Assembly: GCF_000315625.1 (NCBI RefSeq)
Contig: NW_005434626.1
Coordinates: forward strand, 65,001-129,000
Source of the DNA: Guillardia theta CCMP2712
Taxonomy: Eukaryota > Protista > Cryptophyta
Length of the DNA stretch: 64,000 nt
Reading direction: 5' to 3'
In this document: positions 490 through 64,000 of the stretch, piece by piece
Numbering within the stretch: the stretch's first letter is position 1
How the letters are laid out: every line of letters starts with the position of its first letter
Program-made: the position numbers and the translations under genes
The notes under the pieces: generated by a model
What the model was told of the DNA's origin: nothing
Databases searched by the model: none
What the model saw: the letters and a program-made list of their open reading frames with translations, nothing else

Positions 490-3400
490 GCTCGTTTGCC
501 CCCCCTTGGATCGTCACGTTGTTGGTGTGGATACAGAGCTCTTGGGTCTCATGCTCACAACCGTGGACAGGAATGTGGTAAAGTCAGGTTGAAACTTTGA
601 GCTGTACGCCGCCGCTATGCTGGGTTCTTTGTCGCCGATGTCCAACGGTGTCAGAACACGCGAAGATCTGGAGAAGAAGGTTCAGGAGCAAGCTGAGCAG
701 ATCAAGAAATTGGCTGAGAGTCTTCACAATCAACAACTCAAGTGATTGGCCACCACTCCCCTGAGTTTGTGAGGTTGACTTTGCCTCCAAGGTTTCAGCA
801 ACTTCAGCAGAAGTATCAACAGCTGCACAATGAGAATGCTGTTCTCAAGGTACAGCGAGTGTGAACCAATCCGGACTGAAGGAGCTTGTCAGGCGTCCGG
901 GAAGACAGGAGGCGATGACCAAGGAGGCATCATGAGCGAGTTGTCCAAGAAAGATGCTATGCTTGACAGGTGCAGCGAACAGTGTTGTGGTGGAAGGCAG
1001 TGAATTTCTGTTTACAAAGGATGAAACGAGAAGCGAAGCAAGTGATTGATGCCCTTAAGAAGAAGCATGCTGAGGAGGTGATGATAAGCTCCTCCCTCTC
1101 TCCTTCCTTGTTCATGTGGGTGCAGATCGAAGCACTCAAGGCGTCTCACTTGACTCTGTCTCCTGCCTCTTCATCGAGCAGGGCAGCAGCTGGCGACCCG
1201 TCGAGCTCGCATGTACTGGAGGTTCTCACTGCTCTCACTTTCCTGACGTCGAGCGTGTCTAGCAGGGGCCTGCTGCTCATGTTGCAGCTCTCACTGCCGA
1301 GCTGGGGGAAGCAAGAGGACGGATCTCTGAACTAGAGGTGAGTTAGGAAGGGGAGTAGAGGAAGCAGAGTGTTACGGGCGAACGAGCAGGGTTGGGATGC
1401 GCGTCCGTGTCATACGGGAGAGAGTTGAGGAGAAGTTGAGGAGAAGGATTTGACGACACAACAGGTGAAGCTCAACGCAGCTGAAGAAGCTCAAGTGGAC
1501 AAGGAATGGCTGGAAGCAGACCTAATGGCCGCAAAGAGCGAGATCGAGAACTTGAAGAAGGACTTGGCTCTCGCACAAGCAAACTCACACGTCAGGGACG
1601 GAGCGAAGGAGCACGAGAAGGAGATGAAGAGGTTGATTGAGGAGTCGAAGCGGTTGAAAGAGACCAACGAGGAGATGAAGAGTGCTGTTGCTGCCGCCGA
1701 GCAAGGGAAGCTGACTCTTCAATCCGCGCTGGCAGCCATGGAAAGAGAAGTAGGAGAGAAGAAGCAGCAGGAGGAGAAGAGGGAGGAAACTGCGAGATTG
1801 CTGGAGAAGGAGTTGGAGGAAGCAACAGGGGAGATAAAGACACTCCGAGCTAAGATTTTTGAGCTGGAGGAGGACGGTGAATTGCTTCGAAAAGATCTCG
1901 AGGCCACGAAAAGGAAGCTGGAGGAGCAACAGGCCAAGTTTGAGGAAGAAAAGCTTGCAAGCGAGGAAAGACTTCAGTCGAGCAGCAAGGTGACAGAAGA
2001 GGACACTCGCTCCTGCTCACGTTCTTGCAGAGTCCCACGACTTCTCTGCAGCTGGGAGACATGCAGGGCGAGGTCTGTCTGATTGTCCGCCAGGTCCTTG
2101 AAGCCATCGATCTCGCCAACCTAGTCGAGGCTGATGGAAAGTCGCTGGTGCAAGAGGCATGCAGTCTGCAGGAGCAGCAGGCAGCCCGAGAGAAGGAGAG
2201 CAGGGAGATGAAACTGGAGGTTAACGAGAAGGAGAGCAAGATTGAAGGACTGCAGAGCCAGTTGGCAGAGCAGAAGCAGTTAGTCTTCGAGCACCAGCAG
2301 ACCGTGCAGGAGTTGAAACGAGCCAAAGCTAGCATGGAGGAGGAGCTCGAGAGTTTGCAAGTCGAGAACAAGAAGCAGAAAGAGCAGATCACCAAGATCA
2401 AGAACGAAGCGCAGAAGGCGACTGACAAGAGCAAGACTTTGGTTGAAGAGGCACAGATGGCGAAGATCGAGCTCGAGAAAGACCTGGTCCAATACCAGGA
2501 GAAGATCGCAACCCAGGACGCCAGGATCGCCGAATTGCAGAACGAAAGACAGACTCTCATGGCAGTGAGGGCTGAGCTGGCGAGTCACAAGTCTGAATGG
2601 GAAGCCCTAGAGTCACAGCTGAGGCAGCAGCTGCAGGAGAGCGAGGAGGAGAGATCGCGTGCGGAGGAAAGAGAGGCGATCCTGAGGCAGAAGGCGGAGG
2701 AGCTGGAGGAGACCATGGCAAGGCAGGGCAACGCTCATGAGGTGCAGGAGCTGGAGATGCAGCTGCGAGAAGCGAACGAGAAGCTGGCGAAGTTGATGCA
2801 GCATGAGGAGCATGTGGAGACCATGCACAAGGCAGACGTGGACCACCTGAGGAGCGAGAATCAAGCGCTGCGAGAGAAGAACGACAAATATCGACAGATC
2901 TTGCAGCGAGTGAAGGACGAGAGGGCGCAGGAGGAGCAGCAGAAGCTCAAGGACGAGCAAGTGGAAGCAGCGCACAAGCAGGAGATCGAGAAGCTCAGGG
3001 AGAAGATCCTGGAGCTGCAGGCTGCTCCCAGCCATGCTTCCGCATCCAACGGCTTCGTGGCCTACTCGGACCTGATGAATGCGAGGGAGGAGATATCTCA
3101 GCTGGAGGAGGAGCTGAGGGCTGCGCGCATGGAGAGTCAGATGCTGAGGAGAGAGCTCCAGGGGCACAACCAACAGCAAGAGGAGGGGGTCAACCGCGAC
3201 GCCTTCCCTTCAGCGGGCGATCGGTTAGGCCCCGAGGCCGAATGGAGCAATTGGCAGGGCGCGAGCACGTTTGCCAACCCGGCGGCTCCCAGTGCTCTCG
3301 AGTCAAGTGCGGCATGCTCCAGCTCTAGCCCCGGGGCCTTCCAAGAGCTGCGGCACGACGAGGAGGGAGTAGCGTTCTACTCGCAGCGGGCTCTGTGCCT

Positions 3401-4841
3401 CGCAAGCGAGGAGGAGGTCCAAAGCGCGTTGAGCAACATCGAGGGACTCCTGGAGAAGTGCCGAGCGGACTGCCCCCCGTCGTCTGCCGTCCTGACAAGA
3501 CTCGTGAGCGAGGTAGAGCTGCTGCGTCCGATGGTCAGCCTGCGGGAACCAGCAGGAGAGACGGTGAGGAGGCGTCTTTCCTCCTCGGCGAGTACTCACT
3601 GGTCCGCCAGGTGGAGGTCAGGAGCTGGGAGGAGCTCTCGATGCTCCTCTTCGTGAACTCCGACATGCCCGACGGAAGTCCCTTCGTGTTCTGCGGCATG
3701 CCGGACTCCGAGTCTCGTCTCCTTACCAGCGCACAGCAGGTAAGCACATGACGAACTGCTGCCCAGGCTACGTGAACGGGGAAGTGACGTCCACTAGGTG
3801 AGCGAGAGATGCCAAGACAAGGAGTTGGCGATCGTGGAGGTGACAAGTAACTGCGCGCTTAACTTGCTGACATGCTGTCAAGAACTTCCGCAAGGAAGCG
3901 AGCAAGCGACTTTCAACTTCGGCCTCTGCGTTGGAGTGGATGGTGAGCAAACTAAGGAGCAGAATGCGCTTAGGGGGAGATGAGAGGGACGAGGGTAGAT
4001 GAACGGGGGGAGACGAGTTGAGTGAGCAGGAGATTGCAGGCGCTGGGCCATAGGAATGGCCTGCCGACGAGGATGATCGATTTTTGCTCTTCTCCTCTCG
4101 CTGCTGTTCACTGCGCAACTCTGGGAGCAGAAGACAAGCCGGGAGTGAGTGAGTTGCTTCCTGCTGGAAGGAACTGACAAGCTTCAGGTCGTGTGGGCGG
4201 TGGATGCGAGCGTTTGTCACGAGAGCAGTCACTTCTTCCCTCTGTGGAAACAGGATGCGAGCTGGTGGAAAGCGTCAGCAAGGAGGGGAAGAGCTCGAGG
4301 CTTTTCTGGGGGGAAAGTGATGTCAGGAGAGGAGTTTGAGGATTTCGTGCTTTACGGGAAAGAGAAAGCGGAACGAGAGCGAGGGATGGAGATGGGAATG
4401 GAGGAAGACAGAAATCAGCCGCTGGGACACGAAGAGAGGGTCGAGGCCATTGACCTTCAGGTGTTCGGCGACTCTGTCTTCTTTGTAGAGCCGACGATCC
4501 CCGGCGAGTCGCTCTCCTCCACCTCCTCCTCTTCAATGCAACAGGTGGTAATACCCGAAGTTAGGCTTCTTCCTCATCACGTTGCAGGGCCACATCGTCG
4601 CGATCATGGCGGATCGTTACAGGCGGCTGGAGGAGTGGCTGACGAGGAGGCCGGGAGCGTGAGTTGTCCCGTGACTAGGGGAGAAGGGAAGCTAAGCAGG
4701 CGCAGGTACCGTCGCATCCTCATCCCTGCTCGGCTCAAGCGTTCTATCCGGTCGCGGCTGGACCAGTCGGGGCTGACAGAGAAAACGCTGCAGCCCGGGC
4801 TAGACGGGCTGTGCAAGTGGATCCGCAGATGTCACACATGA
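490..4841 (+). CDS. Multi-exon long coiled-coil protein with C-terminal divergent FRG domain (5' start uncertain)
   Basis: E/K/Q-rich coiled-coil ORFs 1450-2082 and 2025-3656. Phase-0 intron 3564-3610 joins them to VEVRSWEELSMLLF..SPFVFCGMPD. Later exons read NFRKEASKRLSTSASALEWM / ALGHRNGLPTRMIDFCSSPLAAVHCAT / VVWAVD / FFVEP / LEEWLTRRPGAYRRILIPARLKRSIRSRLDQSGLTEKTLQPGLDGLCKWIRRCHT*, collinear with bacterial FRG-domain proteins. Confidence 0.75.
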
Positions 4842-4849
4842 AGTGAAGA

Positions 4850-5900
4850 GGTTGAGACAGACGCCTGCTAGGGCAGAGGAAGCAGAGGAGCTTGAGACTC
4901 GATTTGACGCTCGGTGGTCCCTCCAGACCGGATGAGCTCTGACAGTCGTTGTGTGCTCGTCCTCCAAGCAACGCCGTCCCTGAAGTGACTGGCGATGCAC
5001 ATCGAAGGAGGATACTCCTGCTCTCGCCCCGACTCATCCTCTCGTCCTATCCCCTCCTCCTTCCTTGCTCCGTCATGGCTCGGAGATCCCTTACAAGCAT
5101 GTCAGCTTCACTCAGCACAGAGCTTCACCTATCCTCCCCCATTTCTCCCTCTGACCCACAACCTCGCAGCTGAGTCTCGTTCCTCCATCTTCTCACCTCT
5201 GCTGGAGGTCGCAGGGTCCTCGGGAAGGGTTCGGGCGGTGGGACATGCCTCCTTCTCTCGTCCATGTTGCTGCGAGCTCGTCAGAACCGCACAAGCGTCA
5301 AGTCAGTCGCACAGGCTCTTGTTTCCCACAGCCTCCATCCCCTCCTCGCTCCTCCTCCCGTTGGCCTCACAGACGCGTGCGATGTCTTCATGGTCATGGC
5401 CTATGTCGAGCAAAACTTCTTGGCACCAGTCGTCTCTCTCCCTTGTCAGCGACTGAGCCATGCACTGGTCTCTATCCTGATCCCTGCTCTCATTATCGTC
5501 CAGCTCCGACCCACTGAGCCTCCAGGTAGACAGGAATCGCTGGTGAGCTTGCAGCACGCGCGACTCGCATTCCTTCCTCAGTTCCTCCCAGCGCCCGTTG
5601 GTCATCGTCCTCCCGAACCTGCTGGCATCATGGAACAATCAGGCCACCGTCAACCTCATGAGCTCCTCCCTCCTCTTCTCTCTCCTACCTCCTCCCATCA
5701 TCCCTCTCCATCTGCATCTCTCTCACTCGGTCTTCCTCTGCCTCCCTCTACTCTCCCCTACTTCAGTTTTCAGTCTAGCTGAGAGTCTGATGTGGCAACC
5801 CTAACCATGTCAAGTTTCTCGCTCCCGAGCCTGGGTTCGATCATCACATCACTGTCGTAGGCTACACTTCGTTGAGTGCCTCCTACTGACATGGTGGAGT
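4850..5900 (-). CDS. Hypothetical multi-exon protein
   Basis: Charged coding-like ORF 5303-5638 plus neighbouring exon-like segments separated by purine/pyrimidine-skewed introns; no recognisable domain; ends uncertain. Confidence 0.45.
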
Positions 5901-50995: not shown

Positions 50996-52640
50996 ATGCT
51001 TCTCTTCCGCCTCTCGTTATGCTTGATGATGCTAGCAACTCGAGCAACTTCCCATCTGCTCGGAGACACGTGCACTGTGAGGCTTCACCTCTCTCGTTTC
51101 TCATCCCTTCTGTCTTTTCCTCTCTCTTTGCATCTCACTTAGATTCAGATTGCTGGCAACGGAGCCACTGGTTATGCCGATGGAGCTGCAGGGGCTGCGA
51201 GTTTTTCGGGGCCCTCAGGCATCTCAACGTGGGCCAACGGTAGGGGTGAGGCCGAAGCCCCACGCCTGAGAGAGCAGCAGGGAACTCCATCCTTGTGGTC
51301 GACACTGGAAACAACGTGGTCAGGCTGCTCGCCAGCGCACAGGTGAATCAGGCGAGCCGCTGCCGAACCTCTGAAACCTGCTGGGAGGTCTCGACGATCG
51401 CCGGGAACGGGAGGCAGGGCGTCGCAGACGGTCAGGCGACATCGGCTGAGTTCAAGTCACCTCAGTGAGTGCCTTGTGCCTTGCTCATGCTGCTTGCACA
51501 GCTCTCCCAGCGACGTGGCCACCAAGACTGATTTCAACACGGGCATGGTGACGGCGCTGGTAAGCGACACCAACAACAAGAAGATCAGGTTCCTCTACGT
51601 GGGTCAAGAACAGGTCGGGAGGTCTGCCAAGCTTGAGCCCTCCTCTGATGTCCCTGACTGTGTTGGTCATCAAGCTTTGTCCAGACTTCCATGCAACAGC
51701 CGTCAGGTGGTTTGTGTCTTGTTATCCCATCGTGACAGACCTCGCATCTCTCAGCTCTTGCGCTGGCCCCGAACCAGGCGACTCTCATCGTTTCTGACCT
51801 TGAGCTCCATCAACTCCTGACCTTCAACATGGCTGATGGCAAGACTTCGAAGTTCGTGGGAAACGGACAACGAGGATATCAAGACGGCGCAACAGCATCG
51901 TTCAACGGCCCGAGAGGACTGACTTTCTCGCCCGATGGAACCTACGTATGCTCTCCTGCTCTCACGCCCATGACCAGCACCTGCTGCAGATTCTTGTGGC
52001 TGACACAGGCAACCATGTCGTGAGGAAAATTGACGTGGGCTCAGCCATGACCTCCACCCTCGCTGGGGCAGCGGGGATGGCGGGATACCAGGACGGGATG
52101 GGAGTGGATGCGAGGTGAGAGGGAAAGGAGGGAGGAGGAAGTTGACGCGCGCAGGTTTCAATCTCCCTACGGCATCACCATCGACTCTGTCGGGCAGTTC
52201 GCGTATGTCTCAGAGACCGACGGGAACAGGATCAGGTGCCTGTGACAGGCGGGGGCCTTGAAGCCTCTGACGCCTGCCAAGGATGATCGACCTTGCAACA
52301 AACGTCGTGTCCTCCATCAGCGGAAGCAGCCTCGGCCTTGCAGGCTCCCAAGACGGAGAAGGATACACAGCGCGATTCAGCGGTGGAAGCGTCATGACGA
52401 CGTGACAATCAGCTGAGGAGGATGTGACTGGGGAGCTGCAGGTCCCAAGGGGGTGACGCTCATGAACGATCAAGTGCTGCTGGTGTCAGACTCGAACAAC
52501 AACCGAATCCGAGCGGTTGCGACCAAGGTGATAAAAGCTCAAGCGATCCGAGCTGACTTCTCTCATATGGTGCCAACAGGATAACATAAAGATCGATCTT
52601 TGTGTATCATCGACTACCACTCAGAATGCGTATGCTTGAG
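50996..52640 (+). CDS. Secreted NHL-repeat (six-bladed beta-propeller) protein
   Basis: MLLFRLSLCLMMLATRATS signal peptide; repeats IAGNGATGYADG..FSGPSGI, VVDTGNNVVR, IAGNGRQGVADG, VSDTNNKKIR, FNGPRGL, VADTGNHVVR, VSDSNNNRIR. Confidence 0.85.
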
Positions 52641-53548
52641 TCCCATCCTCTCTTTTTGTCTCCTAACTCAACCGAATAGGACCGCGACTGCCAACGAGTT
52701 GAACCTTGATGCTCGCGTAAGTGTAACAAGCCTCCTGAGTATGATTCTGCTTCTTGCGTGGACGTGTTAGATTTAGATAGATTTACAAACATGCTGCCAG
52801 AAACAACTGATGCTCGCCTGATAGTAGAAGCTACTTTCCCCATATCAAATGAGCTTCTTCACCTAAGTTCACCTCTTCTCACTCTCCGAGTCAGTCAAGT
52901 GACATCGGTCAAGGACACTCGAGAACAGCTAAGCGCCTTCAGGCGGCCCGAGACCGACCGTAGGCTGAAGGAGACATGGTGAGGAAAACACGCACACAAT
53001 TCGCAACGACAAGAGCTGCGCAAACACACAACTTCCCTTGGCACAGTACCGTCATCAGCGCAGCCCTGCATCAGTCTGTCCGCTGCCCTACCAGGTGGAC
53101 ATGTCCGTTCTCCGGCGCCGGGAGGTTGGCAGAGCTACCAATTGCCGCCCGCTTTGTGGCGGCAGCGGACGTCTCGACTGACAGTGGTCAGTCGGCTGCC
53201 TCCGGGTATCGCGTCTAAGGGATTTATTCCTCCTGCATGTTGTTGCTTGATTGCTTGTCCCTTCGGCTGCTTGTCTGCACGGCTTCGCGCTTGGGCTGGC
53301 GGTGCCGCGTCTGGGTGCCAGCAGTGCTGGTTCTTTTCGGGCTTGTGTTTTGTGTGTGATTGTGCAGCTTCTCGCTGTGCGCTGTGTGCCAGGAGGTTTA
53401 GCTTGATCCTGCTTTGTTTTGCTTGAGGCACTTTTTACCTTCTGCCAGTAAATCCAATACCGATGGGGGAAACACGTCGAGTGGCGCCGACGATCGGCGC
53501 GGAGCTGGCGAAGCGTCTCCGTCCCTCACTGTGACGTCGGGTGCCTCC

Positions 53549-55342
53549 ATTCGTCACTTTGACCTCTCTGTCCACCTGGCGCTTGAGAAATACCACCGCT
53601 GGCCTTCCTCGCAGTACCTCGCCGCGCATCCCGACCTGCTAGAGTTTGCGAGGTTCAAGCGGGAGCTTCCGCATAGTCGGGGAGGGGACGAGTTCACGCC
53701 CTCTGAGGGTCTACACCCCGCTGTTTACTATACGGCTATCGCTCGCTTCCTCGCTTGGTACTCTGACCAGCCGATGTCACGGACGCTGCTCTCTCCTCAT
53801 AGCCTGGACGTTCACTGCTCGAGATCTCTCCGTGCCCAGAAGCATCCTCTGGCGACCTTCTTCGTTGAGGCGCACGACTTCGTTCATAATGCTGGAGCGA
53901 TCCTCTACCGTCGTGTCAAGGCTCCTGCACCAGCTGCAGATGGCGCGGCGATCCCACCTGCCCCGGCTGCTGTGCCTGATGACGCAGGACGCCCCCCGGC
54001 ATCTGTACTCGTCTCATGAGCACTTCATTCCTCCGCCTGCGCAGCGAAATGTGACCCCTCTTGTCATGCGCGTCTTCCCTCGCCATGTGCATGCTCGCGC
54101 TGCGCTGACCGATCAGCAGCGTCTCGGATATCCTCACCTTGCACAGCCGCAGGACACACTCGCTCAAGTCGCAGGATAGGGTCTTGCAGTCTACCATCTT
54201 CGCTCATTTTCCTGAGCGAGACCTGAGCCACTCTCCGATGCGAGTCTCGAGCTACTACCCCCTCAAGGCCTTCCCGCACCGCTATGCTCAGATGCTCGAC
54301 TGCTATCTCCATGGCATGCCGATCTGCCAGTGTCCGACGGAATGTGATGGATGTCAGCGCGAGCTCGATCCCTCCGTTGCTGCACATCATCTCCAGACCT
54401 GCAAACGCCGATCCTCCAAGCTTCCCACGGCGCATGTCTACCTTCTGCCAGTAAATCCATTATCTTACAACCTTACTCGTACGATTCGGTCGATGCTGAA
54501 CGAAGCTGGTCTTCAGAGCGTCATCGATACAGTGGGGGATCCTCGCTCTCGACGGCAGGTACCCTCCCATCCTCATGGCCGCAAGATGAAGGGCGATATC
54601 CACATCCCTGGAATCCGCGATCGAGGGTCCGAGCAGTACGAGGGCTTGATGGCGGACGTGACGTTGGTCCACTGTGACCCTTACATTGGAAGCTCTGCCG
54701 ACCTGACCAAGTGGGGGGAGGTCAACCTCGACGCCCTCCATGTTGCAGCGTCTGAGAAGATTCGCAAACATCGCGCTGCATATGCTATGACTACTCCTCC
54801 TCGAGCGTTCATCCCTCTTGCCATCTCGACGGACGGTACCCTGCATCCTGACACCCTCCGCTTCATCTGGTATCTCGCGGACATCATTGCTCAGCGCTCA
54901 ATGCCTCTTGAGGATGCGGCGTTTGGTCGGCACTTCGTGCCTGATGACGGACCTGCTGCTGAGGTCTTGGCTCGCAAACGCGCCGCCACCTATCAGCGCC
55001 TCACCATGCAGCTGACGCTGGAGGCGCTCTTGTCTGGTGCGAGGCGCATGACGCCCTTGCGGTCACGCCGGTCCTTGGGCATTGCCGCGGCGTGCGGCCG
55101 CCGTCACGGGCGGCTACCGCTGACTCGGCTACCGCTGACTCGGAGGCTAGCGAGGAGGACTACCTCGAGCGGTACCGTGTTCCTGTGTCCAGCCTCCCTC
55201 CGTCCGCTGCCCCAGGCGGACCCCCGGGCAACGCCGGCTCCTTGTCGGCGGCTGCCCTTTCTCCTTCCGCGGCCGCCCGCTTTGTGCCGGCAGCGGACGT
55301 CTCGACTGACAGTGGTCAGTCGGCTGCCTCCGGGTATCGCGT
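53549..55342 (+). mobile_element. 5'-truncated retrotransposon copy (post-RT region, knuckle, RLE)
   Basis: ORFs 53414-54019 and 54139-55344 match the minus-strand host copy, with internal deletions and a 30-nt self-insertion. Confidence 0.85.
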
Positions 55343-58300
55343 GAAGGTAAAAAGTGCCTCAAGCAAAACAAAGCAGGATCAAGCTAAACCTCCTGGCACA
55401 CAGCGCACAGCGAGGAGCGGCACAATCACACACAAAACACAAGCCCGAAAAGAACCAGCACTGCTGGCACCCAGACGCGGCATCGCCAGCCCAAGCGCGA
55501 AGCCGCGCAGACAAGCAGCCGAAGGGCCAAGCAATCCAGCAACAAGCAGCAGGAGCATGCAGGAGGAATAAATCCCTTACACGCGATACCCGGAGGCAGC
55601 CGACTGACCACTGTCAGTCGAGACGTCCGCTGCCGGCACAAAGCGGGCGGCCGCGGACGGAGAAAGGGCAGCCGCCGACAAGGAGCCGGCGTTGCCCGGG
55701 GGTCCGCCTGGGGCAGCGGACGGAGGGAGGCTGGACACAGGAACACGGTACCGCTCGAGGTAGTCCTCCTCGCTAGCCTCCTCGTCAGCGGTAGCCGAGT
55801 CAGCGGTAGCCGCCCGTGACGGCGGCGACGCCGCGGCAATGCCCAAGGACCGGCGTGACCCGACCGATGCCGGGAGGAAGCAGGCGAGCTCGGACCAGCA
55901 GCAAGCACCCCAGTGGTGTCGAGCTCTCCGGAGGCACCCGGCGACGTCAGTGAGGGACGGAGACGCCTCGCCAGATCCGCGCCGATCGTCGGCGCCACTC
56001 GACGTGTTTCCCCCATCGGAGTCGGAGACCTCCGGCGAAGACTCCCCCTCGGGCGACTCGACAAAGTCCGAGGAGGAGCTGTCCTGTGGCTCGAGAAGTG
56101 CTTGCGCCCGCAAGGGCGTCATGCGCCTGGCACCAGACAAGAGCGCCTCCAGCGTCAGCTGCATGGTGAGGCGCTGATAGGTGGCGGCGCGTTTGCGAGC
56201 CAAGACCTCAGCAGCAGGTCCGTCATCAGGCACGAAGTGCCGACCAAACGCCGCATCCTCAAGAGGCATTGAGCGCTGAGCAATGATGTCCGCGAGATAC
56301 CAGATGAAGCGGAGGGTGTCAGGATGCAGGGTACCGTCCGTCGAGATGGCAAGAGGGATGAACGCTCGAGGAGGAGTAGTCATGGCATATGCAGCGCGAT
56401 GTTTGCGAATCTTCTCAGACGCTGCAACATGGAGGGCGTCGAGGTTGACCTCCCCCCACTTGGTCAGGTCGGCAGAGCTTCCAATGTAAGGGTCACAGTG
56501 GACCAACGTCACGTCCGCCATCAAGCCCTCGTACTGCTCGGACCCTCGATCGCGGATTCCAGGGATGTGGATATCGCCCTTCATCTTGCGGCCATGAGGA
56601 TGGGAGGGTACCTGCCGTCGAGAACGAGGATCCCCCACTGTATCGATGACGCTCTGAAGACCAGCTTCGTTCAGCATCGACCGAATCGTACGAGTAAGGT
56701 TGTCATGCGCCGTGGGAAGCTTGGAGGATCGGCGTTTGCAGGTCTGGAGATGATGTGCAGCAACGGAGGGATCGAGCTCGCGCTGACATCCATCACATTC
56801 CGTCGGACACTGGCAGATCGGCATGCCATGGAGACATTCCGTCGGACACTGGCAGATCGGCATGCCATGGAGATAGCAGTCGAGCATCTGAGCATAGCGG
56901 TGCGGGAAGGCCTTGAGGGGGTGACATAGNNNNNNNNNNNNNNNNNNNNNNNNNNNNNNNNNNNNNNNNNNNNNNNNNNNNNNNNNNNNNNNNNNNNNNN
57001 NNNNNNNNNNNNNNNNNNNNNNNNNNNNNATTTACTGGCAGAAGGTAAAAAGTGCCTCAAGCAAAACAAAGCAGGAACAAGCGGAACCGGCAGGNNNNNN
57101 NNNNNNNNNNNNNNNNNNNNNNNNNNNNNNNNNNNNNNNNNNNNNNNNNNNNNNNNNNNNNNNNNNNNNNNNNNNNNNNNNNNNNNNNNNNNNNGGGGGG
57201 GTAGTAGCTCGAGACTCGCATCAGGTCTCGCTCAGGAAAATGAGCGAAGATGGTAGACTGCAAGACCCTATCCTGCGACTTGAGCGAGTGTGTCCTGCGG
57301 CTGTGCAAGGTGAGGATATCACGCTGCTGATCGGTCAGCGCAGCGCGAGCATGCACATGGCGAGTTTTATTCCTCCTGCATATTGTGCCGCTCCTCGCTG
57401 TGCGCTGTGTGCCAGGAGGTTTAGCTTGTTCCTGCTTTGTTTTGCTTGAGGCACTTTTTACCTTCTGCCAGTAAATCCATTATCCGCGAGGGAAGACGCG
57501 CATGACAAGAGGGGTCACATTTCGCTGCGCAGGCGGAGGAATGAAGTGCTCATGAGACGAGTCGACGAGAGCGCGCAAACCAGGGATGTGTACCACAGAT
57601 GCCGGGGGGCGTCCTGCGTCATCAGGCACAGCAGCCGGGGCAGGTGGGATCGCCGCGCCATCTGCAGCCGGTGCAGGAGCCTTGACACGACGGTAGAGGA
57701 TCGCTCCAGCATTATGAACGAAGTCGTGCGCCTCAACGAAGAAGGTCGCCAGAGGATGCTTCTGGGCACGGAGAGATCTCGAGCAGTGAACGTCCAGGCT
57801 ATGAGGAGAGAGCAGCGTCCGTGACATCGGCTGGTCAGAGTACCAAGCGAGGAAGCGAGCGATAGCCGTATAGTAAACAGCGGGGTGTAGACCCTCAGAG
57901 GGCGTGAACTCGTCCCCTCCCCGACTATGCGGAAGCTCCCGCTTGAACCTCGCAAACTCTAGCAGGTCGGGATGCGCGGCGAGGTACTGCGAGGAAGGCC
58001 AGCGGTGGTATTTCTCAAGCGCCAGGTGGACAGAGAGGTCAAAGCGACGAATCCGCTGACTCGGAGGCTAGCGAGGAGGACTACCTCGAGCGGTACCGTA
58101 CGGTTCCTGTGTCCAGCCTCCCACCGTCCGCTGCCCCAGGCGGACCCCCGGGCAGCGCCGGCTCCTTGTCGGCGGCTGCCCTTTCTCCGTCCGCGGCCGC
58201 CCGCTTTGTGGCGGCAGCGGACGTCTCGACTGACAGCGCCTCAGTCGGCTGCCTCCGGGTATCGCGTCTAAGGGATTTTATTCCTCCTGCATGCTCCTGC

Positions 58301-60110
58301 TGCTTGGTGCTTGATTGCTTGGCCCTTCGGCTGCTTGTCCGAACGTCTGCGCGGCTTCGCGCTTGGGCTGGCGCTGCCGCGTCTGGGTGCCAGCAGTGCT
58401 GGTTCTTTTCGGGCTTGTGTTTTGTGTGTGTTTGTGCAGCTTCTCGCTGTGGACTGTGTGCCTGGAGGTTTAGCTTGATCCTGCTTTGTTTTGCTTGAGG
58501 CACTTTTTACCTTCTGCCAGTAAATCCTATACATCATTGGACCCGCGGGAGAAACGGAGATGACCCCTGGAGGAAGAAGCGCAGCTTCTGGAGATGGCTC
58601 GCCCTCACCAGCGTCTTGAACATGAAGCCATGATGCTGGACGAGCCCGAGCTTTGAGAGCTCTTCGTTGAGGGTAGAAACCTTCGCTCGGAGCTGACTAG
58701 CATGAAATCCATCCGGCGTGCCGATAGGCAGGCCGCCAAGTGTAATCCCGCCAGTGACGACCTCGAAGTGAAGAAGTTGAGTCTTGAGACGCGGCGCTTA
58801 AGGCTCTTCTTCAGCTGCGAGAGATCAGGGTGTTGATGCCAGGAGGGGATGTAAACTTTCGACTCGCGAGGTTGAATCTCTAGCTTCAGATCAGCCACCA
58901 TGTACTTCTTCATAGCGGACGTAGCTGCAACGGCATCCTCGAGTGGACCGACAAGCACGACGTTGTCAGCATAGGCCAAGACTCGAACAGAGGGAAAAAG
59001 CTCTGCGATATGGAGGAGCAGGGGGTGGATACTGTGGCAGAAAAACACGCTGGAGGGGACATCGCCCTGACAGACGCCCGAGGTACACTGAACGGAGGCT
59101 GACTGACTTTTGTGAAAGAGTCGAAGGTCAGCAGAGTCTCCATAGTAGCTGGAGAGGTAGGAGGCGAACAAACGGAGATGCTCGCAAGAGGGCAAGCTTG
59201 CGCCTTCAGTGATGCTCCCATCAAAGTAGTCGCGACTCGCACGTCCCTCGATTGCATCGAAGAGAGCCTGGCGGTCGAGGGAGTTGAAGGCGTTCTTTGC
59301 ATCCAAACTCACCAGCACTGTGGGGTTGGCAACATCCTCATCATCACCGCGAGCGTGAAGGGGCAGGAGCGCTGACGCGGTTTGCGAGAACTTCAGACAG
59401 CCGTTTGTAAATCCTATGTCAGGCCGTCTCGATCGAGCCCGAACTGAATCGCTCGAGGGTGAGACGAGAGGAAGTGCTGGTCAAGAAATGAGCGAATCCC
59501 TGCCAAAGCAAGCTTCGTCGCGAGTCGACGGTGTGCAGAACCGATGACAATTGGCCGGAGACCAGGTTTATCAGCTCCCTTGGAGAGGGGAATAAATCTG
59601 CCTCCTCGACGAATGGCTGACAGGGCAGGAATAAGAAGATCCGGCATCCGGCCAAGAAGGACCCCTTGGAGGATATGTTGGCAGTAGAGCTTCAAAGCTG
59701 CAGGATGACTAGAAAGGGGTGACAGGTGTTGCCGAATCCTCCACCCTTGGTCATCGGTCCCCGCAAAGGAGCTGTGTTGCTTGATCGCCTGGATCAGGCT
59801 AGTGGTGTCGAGGATGTCAGTCAAATCCACCTGCAGTACTGCAAGCGCTTGCTGGGTGAGATGATCCGCGGAAGCACTTCCAAAGGCAGGCGACGCACCA
59901 TCAGGGAACTTCTCTTGTGCTTCAGCAAGAAGATCAGCGAAAGATTCAGCCCTGTAGATGCCGGAGCTCAGTAGTGTCCGTACCGCCCGATGAAGGTCAC
60001 CCGCAGTGAACTGATGAATCGCCAACTGTCGTTGGCGCTCGCTCGCAGAGGTGAGGGACAGCGTAGGTCGCGGCGGAGGAGCAGGCTCAGACTCCTGAGA
60101 CGATTGGCCG
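55343..60110 (-). mobile_element. Longest (host) copy of the retrotransposon, interrupted by four nested insertions
   Basis: Collinear on the minus strand from RT N-terminus (60110-59420) through RT (59400-58535), thumb region (58050-57485), knuckle/RLE and C-terminal extension (56920-55577) to the 3' UTR (55576-55343). Confidence 0.8.
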
Positions 60111-61319
60111 ATGTTATTCCTCCTGCATGCTCCTGCTTGTTGCTTGATTGCTTGACCCTTAGGCTGCTTGTCTGCGCGGCTTCGCGCTTGGGCTGGCGAT
60201 GCCGCGTCTGGGTGCCAGCAGTGCTGGTTCTTTTCGGGCTTGTGTTTTGTGTGTGTTTGTGCAGCTTCTCGCTGTGGACTGTGTGCCTGGAGGTTTAGCT
60301 TGTTCCTGCTTTGTTTTGCTTGAGGCACTTTTTCAGGTGACCTTCTGCCAGTAAATCCATTGTAGTGCTCACTGTGACGTCGGGTGCCAATCCGTAGGTA
60401 TTCCTCCGGAGAGCTCGACACCACTGGGGTGCTTGCTACTGGTCCGAGCTCGCCTGCTTCCTCCCCGGCATCGGTCGGGTCACGCCGGTCCTTGGGCATG
60501 ACATTGCCGCGGCGTCGCCGCCGTCACGGGCGGCTACCGCTGACTCGGCTACCGCTGACTCGGAGGCTAGCGCGGAGGACTACCTCGAGCGGTACCGTGT
60601 TCCTGGGCCTGTGTCCAGCCTCCCTCCGTCCGCTGCCCCAGGCGGACCCCCGGGCAACGCCGGCTCCTTGTCGGCGGCTGCCCTTTCTCCGTCCGCGGCC
60701 GGCAGCTTTGTGGCGGCAGCGGACGTCTCGACTGACAGTGGTCAGTCGGCTGCCTCCGGGTATCGCGTCTAAGGGATTTTATTCCTCCTGCATGCTCCTG
60801 CTGCTTGTTCGCGCTTGGGCTGGCGATGCCGCGTCTGGGTGCCAGCAGTGCTGGTTCTTTTNNNNNNNNNNNNNNNNNNNNNNNNNNNNNNNNNNNNNNN
60901 NNNNNNNNNNNNNNNNNNNNNNNNNNNNNNNNNNNNNNNNNNNNNNNNNNNNNNNNNNNNNAAATCCACTAGGATTAGGAGGCCATCCAGTCCAGGAGGT
61001 GCCTCGAGTTAGAAGAAGGAGTAGCGGGTGCCAAGAGCTGCCTCCGGGTGTGCTTGAGGCACTTTTTACCTTCTGCCAGTAAATCCGCCTGGGGCAGCGG
61101 ACGGAGGGAGGCTGGACACAGGAACACGGTACCGCTCGAGGTAGTCCTCCTCGCTTTTCTTCCTCCTGCATGCTCCTGCTGCTTGTTGCTTGATTGCTTG
61201 ACCCTTAGGCTGCTTTGTTTTGCTTGAGGCACTTTTTACCTTCTGCCAGTAAATCCAATGTGCTTGTCAGTAAATCCTATACAAGCCTTGTCTGCGCGGC
61301 TTCGCGCTTGGGCTGGCGA

Positions 61320-62930
61320 TGGACCTGAGCGGTGATGATGAGGATGTTGCCAACCCCACAGTGCTGGTGAGTTTGGATGCAAAGAACGCCTTCAACTCCC
61401 TCGACCGCCAGGCTCTCTTCGATGCAATCGAGGGACGTGCGAGTCGCGACTACTTTGATGGGAGCATCACTGAAGGCGCAAGCTTGCCCTCTTGCGAGCA
61501 TCTCCGTTTGTTCGCCTCCTACCTCTCCAGCTACTATGGAGACTCTGCTGACCTTCGACTCTTCACAAAAGTCAGTCAGCCTCCGTTCAGTGTACCTCGG
61601 GCGTCTGTCAGGGCGATGTCCCCTCCAGCGTATTTTTCTGCCACAGTATCCACCCCCTGCTCCTCCATATCGCAGAGCTTTTCCCCTCTGTTCGAGTCTT
61701 GGCCTATGCTGACAACGTCGTGCTTGTCGGTCCACTCGAGGATGCCGTTGCAGCTACGTCCGCTATGAAGAAGTACATGGTGGCTGATCTGAAGCTAGAG
61801 ATTCAACCTCGCGAGTCGAAAGTTTACATCCCCTCCTGGCATCAACACCCTGATCTCTCGCAGCTGAAGAAGAGCCTTAAGCGCCGCGTCTCAAGACTCA
61901 ACTTCTTCACTTCGAGGTCGTCACTGGCGGGATTACACTTGGCGGCCTGCCTATCGGCACGGATGGATTTCATGCTAGTCAGCTCCGAGCGAAGGTTTCT
62001 ACCCTCAACGAAGAGCTCTCAAAGCTCGGGCTCGTCCAGCATCATGGCTTCATGTTCAAGACGCTGGTGAGGGCGAGCCATCTCCAGAAGCTGCGCTTCT
62101 TCCTCCAGGGGTCATCTCCGTTTCTCCCGCGGGTGCAATCACAGATTCGTCGCTTTGACCTCTCTGTCCACCTGGCGCTTGAGAAATACCACCGCTGGCC
62201 TTCCTCGCAGTACCTCGCCGCGCATCCCGACCTGCTAGAGTTTGCGAGGTTCAAGCGGGAGCTTCCGCATAGTCGGGGAGGGGACGAGTTCACGCCCTCT
62301 GAGGGTCTACACCCCGCTGTTTACTATACGGCTATCGCTCGCTTCCTCGCTTGGTACTCTGACCAGCCCATGTCCCGGATGTTGCCCTCTCCTCATAGCC
62401 TGGACGTTCACTGCTCGAGATCTCTCCGTGCCCAGAAGCATCCTCTGGCGACCTTCTTCGTTGAGGCGCACGACTTCGTTCATAATGCTGGAGCGATCCT
62501 CTACCGTCGTGTCAAGGCTCCTGCACCAGCTGCAGATGGCGCGGCGATCCCACCTGCCCCGGCTGCTGTGCCTGATGACGCAGGACGCCCCCCGGCATCT
62601 GTGGTACACATCCCTGGTTTGCGCGCTCTCGTCGACTCGTCTCATGAGCACTTCATTCCTCCCCCTGCGCAGCGAAATGTGAACCCTCTTGTCATGCGCG
62701 TCTTCCCTCGCCATGTGCATGCTCGCGCTGCGCTGACCGATCAGCAGCGTGATATCCTCACGCCGATCCTCCAAGCTTCCCACGGCGCATGACAACCTTA
62801 CTCGTACGATTCGGTCGATGCTGAACGAAGCTGGTCTTCAGAGCGTCATCGATACAGTGGGGGATCCTCGTTCTCGACGGCAGGTACCCTCCCATCCTCA
62901 TGGCCGCAAGATGAAGGGCGATATCCACAT
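61320..62930 (+). mobile_element. Truncated retrotransposon copy (RT core to RLE start) with internal deletion
   Basis: LVSLDAKNAFNSLDR, AYADN, DLSVHLALEKYHRW; jumps from DILT directly to RRSSKLPTAHDNL; runs into an N gap. Confidence 0.85.
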
Positions 62931-63389
62931 TNNNNNNNNNNNNNNNNNNNNNNNNNNNNNNNNNNNNNNNNNNNNNNNNNNNNNNNNNNNNNNNNNNNNN
63001 NNNNNNNNNNNNNNNNNNNNNNNNNNNNNNNNNNNNNNNNNNNNNNNNNNNNNNNNNNNNNNNNNNNNNNNNNNNNNNNNNNNNNNNNNNNNNNNNNNNN
63101 NNNNNNNNNNNNNNNNNNNNNNNNNNNNNNNNNNNNNNNNNNNNNNNNNNNNNNNNNNNNNNNNNNNNNNNNNNNNNNNNNNNNNNNNNNNNNNNNNNNN
63201 NNNNNNNNNNNNNNNNNNNNNNNNNNNNNNNNNNNNNNNNNNNNNNNNNNNNNNNNNNNNNNNNNNNNNNNNNNNNNNNNNNNNNNNNNNNNNNNNNNNN
63301 NNNNNNNNNNNNNNNNNNNNNNNNNNNNNNNNNNNNNNNNNNNNNNNNNNNNNNNNNNNNNNNNNNNNNNNNNNNNNNNNNNNNNNNNN

Positions 63390-64000
63390 AAACACAAGCC
63401 CGAAAAGAACCAGCACTGCTGGCACCCAGACGCGGCATCGCCAGCCCAAGCGCGAAGCCGCGCAGACAAGCAGCCTAAGGGTCAGGCAATCAAGCAACAA
63501 GCAGCAATCGCGGATTCCAGGGATGTGGATATCGCCCTTCATCTTGCGGCCATGAGGATGGGAGGGTACCTGCCGTCGAGAACGAGGATCCCCCACTGTA
63601 TCGATGACGCTCTGAAGACCAGCTTCGTTCAGCATCGACCGAATCGTACGAGTAAGGTTGTCATGCGCCGTTGGAAGCTTGGAGGATCGGCGTTTGCAGG
63701 TCTGGAGATGATGTGCAGCAACGGAGGGATCGAGCTCGCGCTGACATCCATCACATTCCGTCGGACACTGGCAGATCGGCATGCCATGGAGATAGCAGTC
63801 GAGCATCTGAGCATAGCGGTGCGGGAAGGCCTTGAGGGGGTAGTAGCTCGAGACTCGCATCGGAGAGTGGCTCAGGTCTCGCTCAGGAAAATGAGCGAAG
63901 ATGGTAGACTGCAAGACCCTATCCTGCGACTTGAGCGAGTGTGTCCTGCGGCTGTGCAAGGTGAGGATATCACGCAGCTGATCGGTTAGCGCAGCGCGAG
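63390..64000 (-). mobile_element. Truncated retrotransposon copy (knuckle region joined directly to 3' UTR), continues past window end
   Basis: ORF 62898-63959 shows HIPGIRD fused to 3' UTR sequence, so most of the RLE and the C-terminal extension are deleted. Confidence 0.8.

Follow-up and report, generated by a model that had tools for sequence, protein, structure and literature searches.

Nested islands of a restriction-like-endonuclease LINE, one on each island-bearing large scaffold, as candidate centromeres of the cryptophyte Guillardia theta

The window analyzed here, a stretch of 64,000 nucleotides (nt) from the cryptophyte Guillardia theta CCMP2712 (scaffold C48:65001-129000), ends inside a dense accumulation of a single mobile element: window positions 53144-64000 are the left 10.9 kb of a ~23-kb island that consists almost wholly of one non-LTR (long terminal repeat) retrotransposon. 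Its sequence and modeled fold place the element among the long interspersed nuclear elements (LINEs) with a restriction-like endonuclease (RLE). We consider it likely that such nested islands occur once per chromosome, that integration is directed to a region, and that the feature recognized is centromeric chromatin. Their position and number make the islands the best current candidates for G. theta centromeres. Neither a nuclear centromere of any cryptophyte nor the island family is described in the literature searched, outside of which most subscription journals fall.

Scaffold C48 is 558,711 bp long, in a genome assembly of 87.1 Mb and 669 scaffolds, and no telomere repeat is found at the C48 ends; protein matches named GUITHDRAFT_* point to G. 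theta as the source. Positions within the element are given throughout on a natural, gap-free copy of 4.9 kb (C77:45678-50600, hereafter the reference), which was used as it stands, with neither repair nor consensus building. When window positions 52501-64000 are compared with this copy by blastn, 53144-64000 resolves into 26 segments of the one family throughout, and the letters not assigned to it comprise 758 N, in four runs, together with 89 nt at 60962-61050 of which the first 6 nt alone are recognizable. A preliminary description of this DNA had counted at least 13 fragments of one family over more than 10.8 kb and no copy in the preceding 53 kb; both statements stand, and self-blast finds zero copies of the island family in window positions 1-53100. 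Directly beyond the window lies a 6.4-kb N gap (C48:129,001-135,447), after which family sequence runs again from C48:135,448 to C48:141,334, where unique DNA returns. The whole island spans C48:118,144-141,334, ~23 kb, of which 6.4 kb are the N gap.

The same arrangement recurs across the genome. A search pattern of 31 nt, taken from where the element ends on its 3′ side and allowing two or fewer mismatches, has 699 matches genome-wide and 0 in a control. The 100 of these with coordinates, on C1-C24, form one 2-23 kb island on every scaffold that has matches; a pattern that includes the tail TATG has 107 matches, down to contig C269, with two islands on no contig. Among the resulting 207 matches listed, all but one (C21:590,292) fall, scaffold by scaffold, within one island of 2-29 kb, and the 3′-end positions agree with those found by DNA and protein searches. 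Within the same set, 23 of the 24 largest scaffolds carry one island each and none carries two, and the chance that 23 islands placed at random on 24 equal scaffolds would never share one is ~1e-8. The expectation stated at the outset, of about one cluster per chromosome as opposed to even dispersal, is what these matches display. The match lists contain ~85 contigs, of which ~70 exceed ~60 kb; very roughly, this would be compatible with ~70 chromosomes of ~1.2 Mb.

The islands are also internal. The telomere repeat is TTTAGGG, and five scaffolds of 1.09-1.30 Mb (C2, C3, C4, C5, and C12) have CCCTAAA on the left and TTTAGGG on the right; because these repeats are correctly oriented near both ends, the five scaffolds represent near-complete chromosomes. 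Each contains one island, at 55%, 50%, 32%, 57%, and 81% of its length, respectively, and thus shows the single, internal locus per chromosome that a centromere requires. Relative island position, calculated for 20 scaffolds of known length out of the 21 largest with an island, ranges over 22-86% of scaffold length. The preliminary description had suggested either a centromere or a chromosome-end domain. Because scaffolds that bear telomeres, including the telomere-to-telomere ones, have their islands in the interior, the subtelomeric alternative is refuted, whereas the centromeric one gains support. On C4, the left telomere array is set in from the scaffold end by 10-17 kb; C1, C7, C21, C63, and C77 have a telomere repeat at one end.

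Junction statistics, compiled from seven fetched islands and sixteen shorter loci, bear on how this distribution arises. Family sequence is present within 44 nt after 106 of 110 3′ ends, while the other 3′ ends, together with isolated fragments 3-6 kb outside the islands, sit in unique DNA. Target positions extend over reference 784-4918. With duplicate loci removed, 78 junctions have short filler; their targets range over reference 1044-4886, and no position carries more than 0.22 bit of information, indicating that these junctions have no sequence-specific target, unlike the usual RLE group. This agrees with the initial impression that insertion sites share no sequence and that targeting is regional. 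Flanks of six islands have no repeat in common, and the islands and their flanks contain no tRNA, satellite or tandem repeat, or Rfam family (the Rfam scan covered 124 kb). A spliced-leader RNA gene, as a possible target, has no Rfam match in the same 124 kb; the targets are the element's own copies. Two further families of RLE-type LINEs, B and C, share 36-44% identity with the island family across the reverse transcriptase (RT) and retain long open frames, the longest of 1406 aa. Their copies are found on the arms of chromosomes and not in islands: family B (P0180-like) at C19:797570-799072, C36:562481, and C22:572568, and family C (~44% identical to B) at C22:194753, C31:87172, C4:599760, C58:410381, and C42:442643. 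It follows from their dispersal that the arms tolerate such elements. The junctions argue for integration that is region-directed and without a target motif; together, the spread of targets, the insertions into unique DNA, the negative searches for a common target, and the families on the arms weigh against both self-homing and selection alone.

The element is ~4.9 kb long, with homology among long copies extending from C77:45678 to ~C77:50587-50591. Its 3′ end reads ...CAGTAAATCC at C77:50587, and is also given as ...GAGGCACTTTTTACCTTCTGCCAGTAAATCC, without poly(A); a tail of 0-6 nt follows, which is TATA in 33 and TATG in 11 of the 78 junctions. The longest G. theta open frames comprise 977-1017 aa, and the copy in the window accounts for 436 aa at the C terminus; still longer frames, of 1,900-2,559 aa, were rejected as artefacts in which N gaps are read as X. 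A relative from a public run (P0005, on contig L058), with 70% identity, has an intact frame of 1511 aa, and by comparison the element would encode one protein of roughly 1,500 aa. In order, this protein has a conserved N-terminal domain, a polyglutamine (polyQ) tract, RT, a CCHC knuckle, and finally a restriction-like endonuclease of the R2 type. The G. theta element shares the N-terminal domain with P0005, encoding it at reference 104-538, on the 5′ side of the CAG/polyQ expansion; an ESM Atlas look-up with this domain returned scores of 0.81-0.82, the chance level. The CAG/CAA tract itself (reference ~540-1080) differs strongly in length between copies (L020:157-700, from C63, versus L017:478-700, from C77) and is missing from P0005. 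Several annotated G. theta "genes" are pieces of the island retrotransposon, among them GUITHDRAFT_110825, on C48, and GUITHDRAFT_122725, GUITHDRAFT_110103, and GUITHDRAFT_112513.

Assignment to the RLE-type LINEs draws on several lines of comparison. Pfam detects RVT_1 alone, at 26-28.7 bits and just below the cut-off of 29.6, and no Exo_endo_phos in P0005 or the G. theta copies, hence no apurinic-type endonuclease upstream of the RT. A word-based protein search recovers the G. theta copies and the one 70%-identity relative only; an exhaustive HMMER search recovers 757 relatives. For six distant relatives, Pfam reports RVT_1, one N-terminal UCH fusion, and nothing else. The distant metagenomic relative P0080 (1577 aa; 26% identity from RT to RLE) has an N-terminal ubiquitin carboxyl-terminal hydrolase (PF00443, E 4e-29). 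Searched with a single copy, phmmer finds no match in the PDB; a profile of 12 relatives matches R2 proteins best (E 6.8e-15), with LINE-1 ORF2p at ~1e-4. This profile aligns the motifs to R2 one by one: CCHC, (R/A)H(N/D), (P/G)D, DVT, and K. The knuckle between RT and endonuclease, C-x2-C ... H-x4-C, is conserved in the 12 relatives (23-71% identity) and aligns to the R2 CCHC, and in the PD-(D/E)xK endonuclease the G/D (GDI), D (DVT), and K are invariant. The endonuclease domain alone has a weak sequence score (7 bits). When the last 206 aa are modeled with AlphaFold (predicted local distance difference test, pLDDT, 77), R2Tg, R2Pm, and R2Bm proteins make up the four best Foldseek matches (E 6e-4 to 2e-2; best probability 1.0), followed by viral PD-(D/E)xK endonucleases. 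Judged by profile match, aligned motifs, and predicted fold, the element is an RLE-type LINE, as first proposed; the narrower label of CRE-like is tentative, the 20 distant relatives looked up being metagenome or transcriptome proteins that carry no useful name.

Within the window, nesting can be followed copy by copy (Table 1). One plus-strand copy (reference 2626-4658, window 53549-55342) is split by a 3.8-kb minus-strand copy (55343-60110), such that it stops at reference 4658 at 55342 and continues from reference 4665 at 60110; ~7 host bases were lost at the insertion. The minus-strand copy is itself broken four times, at 56923-57196, 57365-57486, 58053-58535, and 59407-59420. The first of these inserts has GGGGGT on both sides, with the host passing from reference 3362 to 3367, the second has a 5-bp target duplication (GCGAG), and the third took the place of four host bases, TGTG, of which the uninserted form exists in other copies. 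Micro-insertions at 54437-54466, 59407-59420, and 61269-61287 consist of the last 8-19 nt of the element and an A/T-rich tail. The first (30 nt, inside the 53549-55062 fragment) has 19 terminal nt and the tail ATTATCTT, and the third has a TTGTC duplication; all three are traces of aborted reverse transcription. The six nested insertions listed in the preliminary description are all present, three of them as these micro-insertions, and the 3.8-kb nesting is found besides. The duplications given in that description (GCGAG, GGGGGT, TTGTC) were also recovered, as were small deletions (TGTG and the ~7 host bases).

Table 1. Segments and features of the island within the window (window positions; reference numbering as in C77:45678-50600).
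Feature	Position	Strand	Basis
Left island edge; 5′-truncated copy, reference 4588-4914	53144..53459	+	blastn against C77 copy, edge read
Short internal fragment, reference 4217-4305	53460..53548	+	blastn
Copy fragment, C-terminal third of open reading frame, reference 2626-4129	53549..55062	+	blastn
Host copy, reference 4379-4658; broken at 55342 by the large minus-strand copy	55061..55342	+	blastn
5′-truncated 3.8-kb copy, reference 4897 down to 1077; encodes RT, CCHC, RLE	55343..60110	-	blastn
436-aa open frame: CCHC knuckle, RLE motifs, low-complexity C-terminal tail	55577..56887	-	translation
Nested copy across two N runs; readable part is the 3′ end, 57030-57094 only	56923..57196	-	
Nested 3′ fragment, reference ~4667-4685 joined to 4814-4910, tail ATTATCC	57365..57486	+	
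Nested 479-nt 3′ fragment, reference 4448-4914, tail TATACATC	58053..58535	+	blastn, junction reading
Micro-insertion GTAAATCC + TATG: last 8 nt of element and tail	59407..59420	+	
Host copy continues, reference 4665-4910, to its 3′ end	60110..60358	+	blastn, junction reading
Mosaic of eight short 3′-region fragments, both orientations, reference 4301-4910	60403..61318	.	
Copy fragment, reference 1814-3242 joined to 3510-3678, RT to CCHC	61329..62930	+	blastn
Fragments, reference 4805-4689 and 3694-3203, running off the window into the 6.4-kb N gap	63390..64000	-	

Several segments show further detail. The copy at the left edge (53144-53459) ends in the element's 3′ end, ...CAGTAAATCC, plus the tail AATA, and is inserted beside unique DNA. 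The 436-aa frame at 55577-56887 contains the RLE motifs AHD, GDI, DVT, and K..KH..Y, and has a 39-bp tandem duplication close to its start. The mosaic at 60403-61318, which includes one N run (60862-60961), records a site that was hit twice in succession, leaving TGCTTGTC/TTGTC duplications, and the fragment at 61329-62930 is 98-99% identical to copies from other islands. The N runs can in part be read across. The run at 56930-57029 has ~zero length and hides ~1 base, the reverse complement of tail and 3′ end being continuous across it; that at 57095-57194 covers the body of the nested insert 56923-57196; and that at 60862-60961 fits one 3′ fragment, with reference 4792 before, 4905 after, and ~112 nt missing. 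The two sides of the run at 62932-63389 are not continuous, and the junction between them is hidden. In Logan contigs from four public runs, the 3′-end bins are ~10-18x deeper than the body, as expected from 5′ truncation. A low-depth 780-nt contig at window 57221-58581, from run X15 (by guess an RNA run), corresponds to element body without any interruption; the island family may be transcribed, the type of this run being uncertain.

A mechanism consistent with these features can be proposed. Reverse transcription would begin at the 3′ end of the RNA and usually abort early, and early abortion would leave 5′-truncated copies, micro-insertions of 8-30 nt, and either 5-8 bp duplications or the loss of a few bases. 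Integration would be aimed at a region and not at a sequence, with earlier copies, or unique DNA no more than a few kb from an island, as landing places, and almost all copies in the genome would lie in one island per chromosome. The region would be recognized by the state of its chromatin, which is most likely centromeric and is read by way of the N-terminal domain; the islands would be, or would directly adjoin, the centromeres of chromosomes of ~1.1-1.4 Mb.

A number of observations weigh against this interpretation. The centromeric role is deduced from where the islands lie and how many there are, and coordinates cover 207 of the 699 3′ ends (100 of the 31-nt pattern and 107 of the TATG-tail pattern). 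Among the matches listed, each of the 24 largest scaffolds has an island except C16 (1,003,651 bp), whose centromere may be missing from the assembly, hidden in a gap, or marked by diverged copies only. Insertions share the orientation of the target copy more often than they oppose it (54:24, p 0.0009), and this 2:1 bias hints at an unexplained preference for strand or sequence. The assembly is an older, scaffolded one with N gaps in every island, and island sizes and some junctions are accordingly uncertain; in the Logan contigs, uninterrupted forms derive from other copies only, and the repeats are unbridged. Finally, three pairs of nested junctions are identical in target coordinate and filler letters (C12:882440 and C75:301508; C63:399318 and C19:408809; C32:580633 and C32:582656). 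Because such identity occurs on different scaffolds, some of the structure would have spread as composite pieces and not as new insertions, having been copied between or within islands, or else mis-assigned by the assembler.

Among other explanations, the one that fares best holds that the islands are heterochromatic safe havens, one per chromosome and unrelated to the kinetochore, and that the element seeks out silent chromatin while contributing to its formation. Nesting and the missing target motif would fit any chromatin-directed targeting, and the step from island to centromere is one of deduction, but a safe haven would have to be a once-per-chromosome feature in order to yield exactly one island wherever a scaffold runs from telomere to telomere, and never two on any of the 24 largest. 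To our knowledge, the centromere is the only such feature, and we regard kinetochore-unrelated havens as unlikely. It is less likely still that the endonuclease has a cleavage site within the element itself, so that founding copies seed piles by sequence-specific self-homing and the islands have nothing to do with chromosome function. That 96% of 3′ junctions adjoin family sequence would be expected of such homing, as would the 54:24 bias in orientation, and most RLE elements are target-specific according to one published account (PMC4640811). Yet the insertion points, found in either orientation and without a motif, are scattered along 4 kb of the element; fragments occur in unique DNA as well, both where islands end and 3-6 kb beyond; and founders landing at random would not produce exactly one island per chromosome.

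Region-directed integration also has to be set against insertion at random, with survival only in a gene-free, low-recombination centromere core and removal by selection everywhere else. The G. theta genome is gene-dense and the islands are bordered directly by unique sequence, as this explanation would predict; it nonetheless appears quite improbable, given that harmless fragments containing little beyond the 3′ end are equally confined to islands (206 of the 207 listed 3′ ends) and that related RLE families persist on the arms. An assembly artefact, in which repeat reads were piled up or mis-joined and neither nesting nor clustering is real, could draw on the four N runs in the finding, the 6.4-kb gap right after it, and the failure of independent contigs to bridge the junctions, but is scarcely credible when mis-assembly cannot create the hallmarks of reverse transcription (3′ end with tail, target duplications, micro-insertions), the C77 island is gap-free, and island flanks are unique and situated on telomere-to-telomere scaffolds.

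The evidence supports regarding the family as a candidate centromere-associated retrotransposon. In the fullest form of the argument, toward which we lean by a narrow measure, the ~70 islands are the G. theta centromeres, the first to be defined in a cryptophyte, and were built by an RLE LINE that lost its site specificity and uses a novel N-terminal domain to read centromeric chromatin; the strategy known from Zepp elements of green algae would then have been invented a second time, by another LINE superfamily and in another eukaryotic supergroup. Cryptophyte centromeres thereby become directly testable: one family-specific 31-nt probe marks one locus per chromosome-size scaffold seen, and offers a handle for CENH3 mapping, chromosome counting, and the construction of artificial chromosomes for a model alga. 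If the interpretation is correct, an RLE-type LINE can integrate by region and not by site, in a group generally held to be strict site-specialists, and the N-terminal domain would be a natural protein with which to find what recognizes centromeric chromatin.

Comparison with known systems places the G. theta family between several of them. R2 inserts at one site in 28S ribosomal DNA (rDNA) and binds DNA through N-terminal zinc-finger and Myb domains. The G. theta protein resembles R2 (structures 9nl3, 9dou, 9nl2, and 8gh6) in the succession of RT, CCHC knuckle, and PD-(D/E)xK endonuclease, and R2 is its best match by both profile and fold; it differs in lacking a target motif or rDNA and in having an unrelated N-terminal domain and polyQ, and identity over the endonuclease is ~15-17%. 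Elements of the CRE clade (CRE1/2, SLACS, CZAR), as well as MoTeR and Cnl1, target spliced-leader genes or telomere repeats. They share with the G. theta family the RLE-type architecture and the build-up at one kind of chromosomal place, but the G. theta islands have no RNA gene and are internal, far from the TTTAGGG telomeres. Plant CRM chromoviruses, DIRS-1 of Dictyostelium, and Tcn elements of Cryptococcus are LTR or DIRS elements that use an integrase or recombinase; there, too, a retroelement family is confined to and composes one region, a regional centromere in those organisms and a candidate one here, whereas the G. theta element is a LINE and would use target-primed reverse transcription.

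Apurinic-type endonucleases are characteristic of L1-clade LINEs such as Zepp, whereas the G. theta family has a C-terminal CCHC knuckle and an R2-like restriction-like endonuclease, without poly(A). In other respects, the green-algal elements provide the closest parallel. Zepp (Coccomyxa/Chlorella) and ZeppL-1_cRei (Chlamydomonas) are L1-clade LINEs at centromeres, where they form one nested, 3′-end-rich cluster per chromosome, with virtually none elsewhere in the genome (PMC8226300), and in Chlamydomonas CENH3 associates with ZeppL elements (bioRxiv 10.1101/2025.03.28.645958). The Zepp-like behavior ascribed to the family in the preliminary description is apparent in its nesting, its 3′-end-rich arrays, and its lack of a target motif: as in Zepp and ZeppL, the family occupies one cluster per chromosome, inserts into itself, and becomes rich in 3′ ends by 5′ truncation. 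One account describes most RLE LINEs as target-specific, for repetitive genes or microsatellites, and in that light the missing site specificity of the G. theta family is unusual (PMC4640811). Because Zepp and ZeppL are L1-clade elements of green algae, the cryptophyte case would be convergent, and its behavior looks like that of Zepp arrived at by another LINE superfamily.

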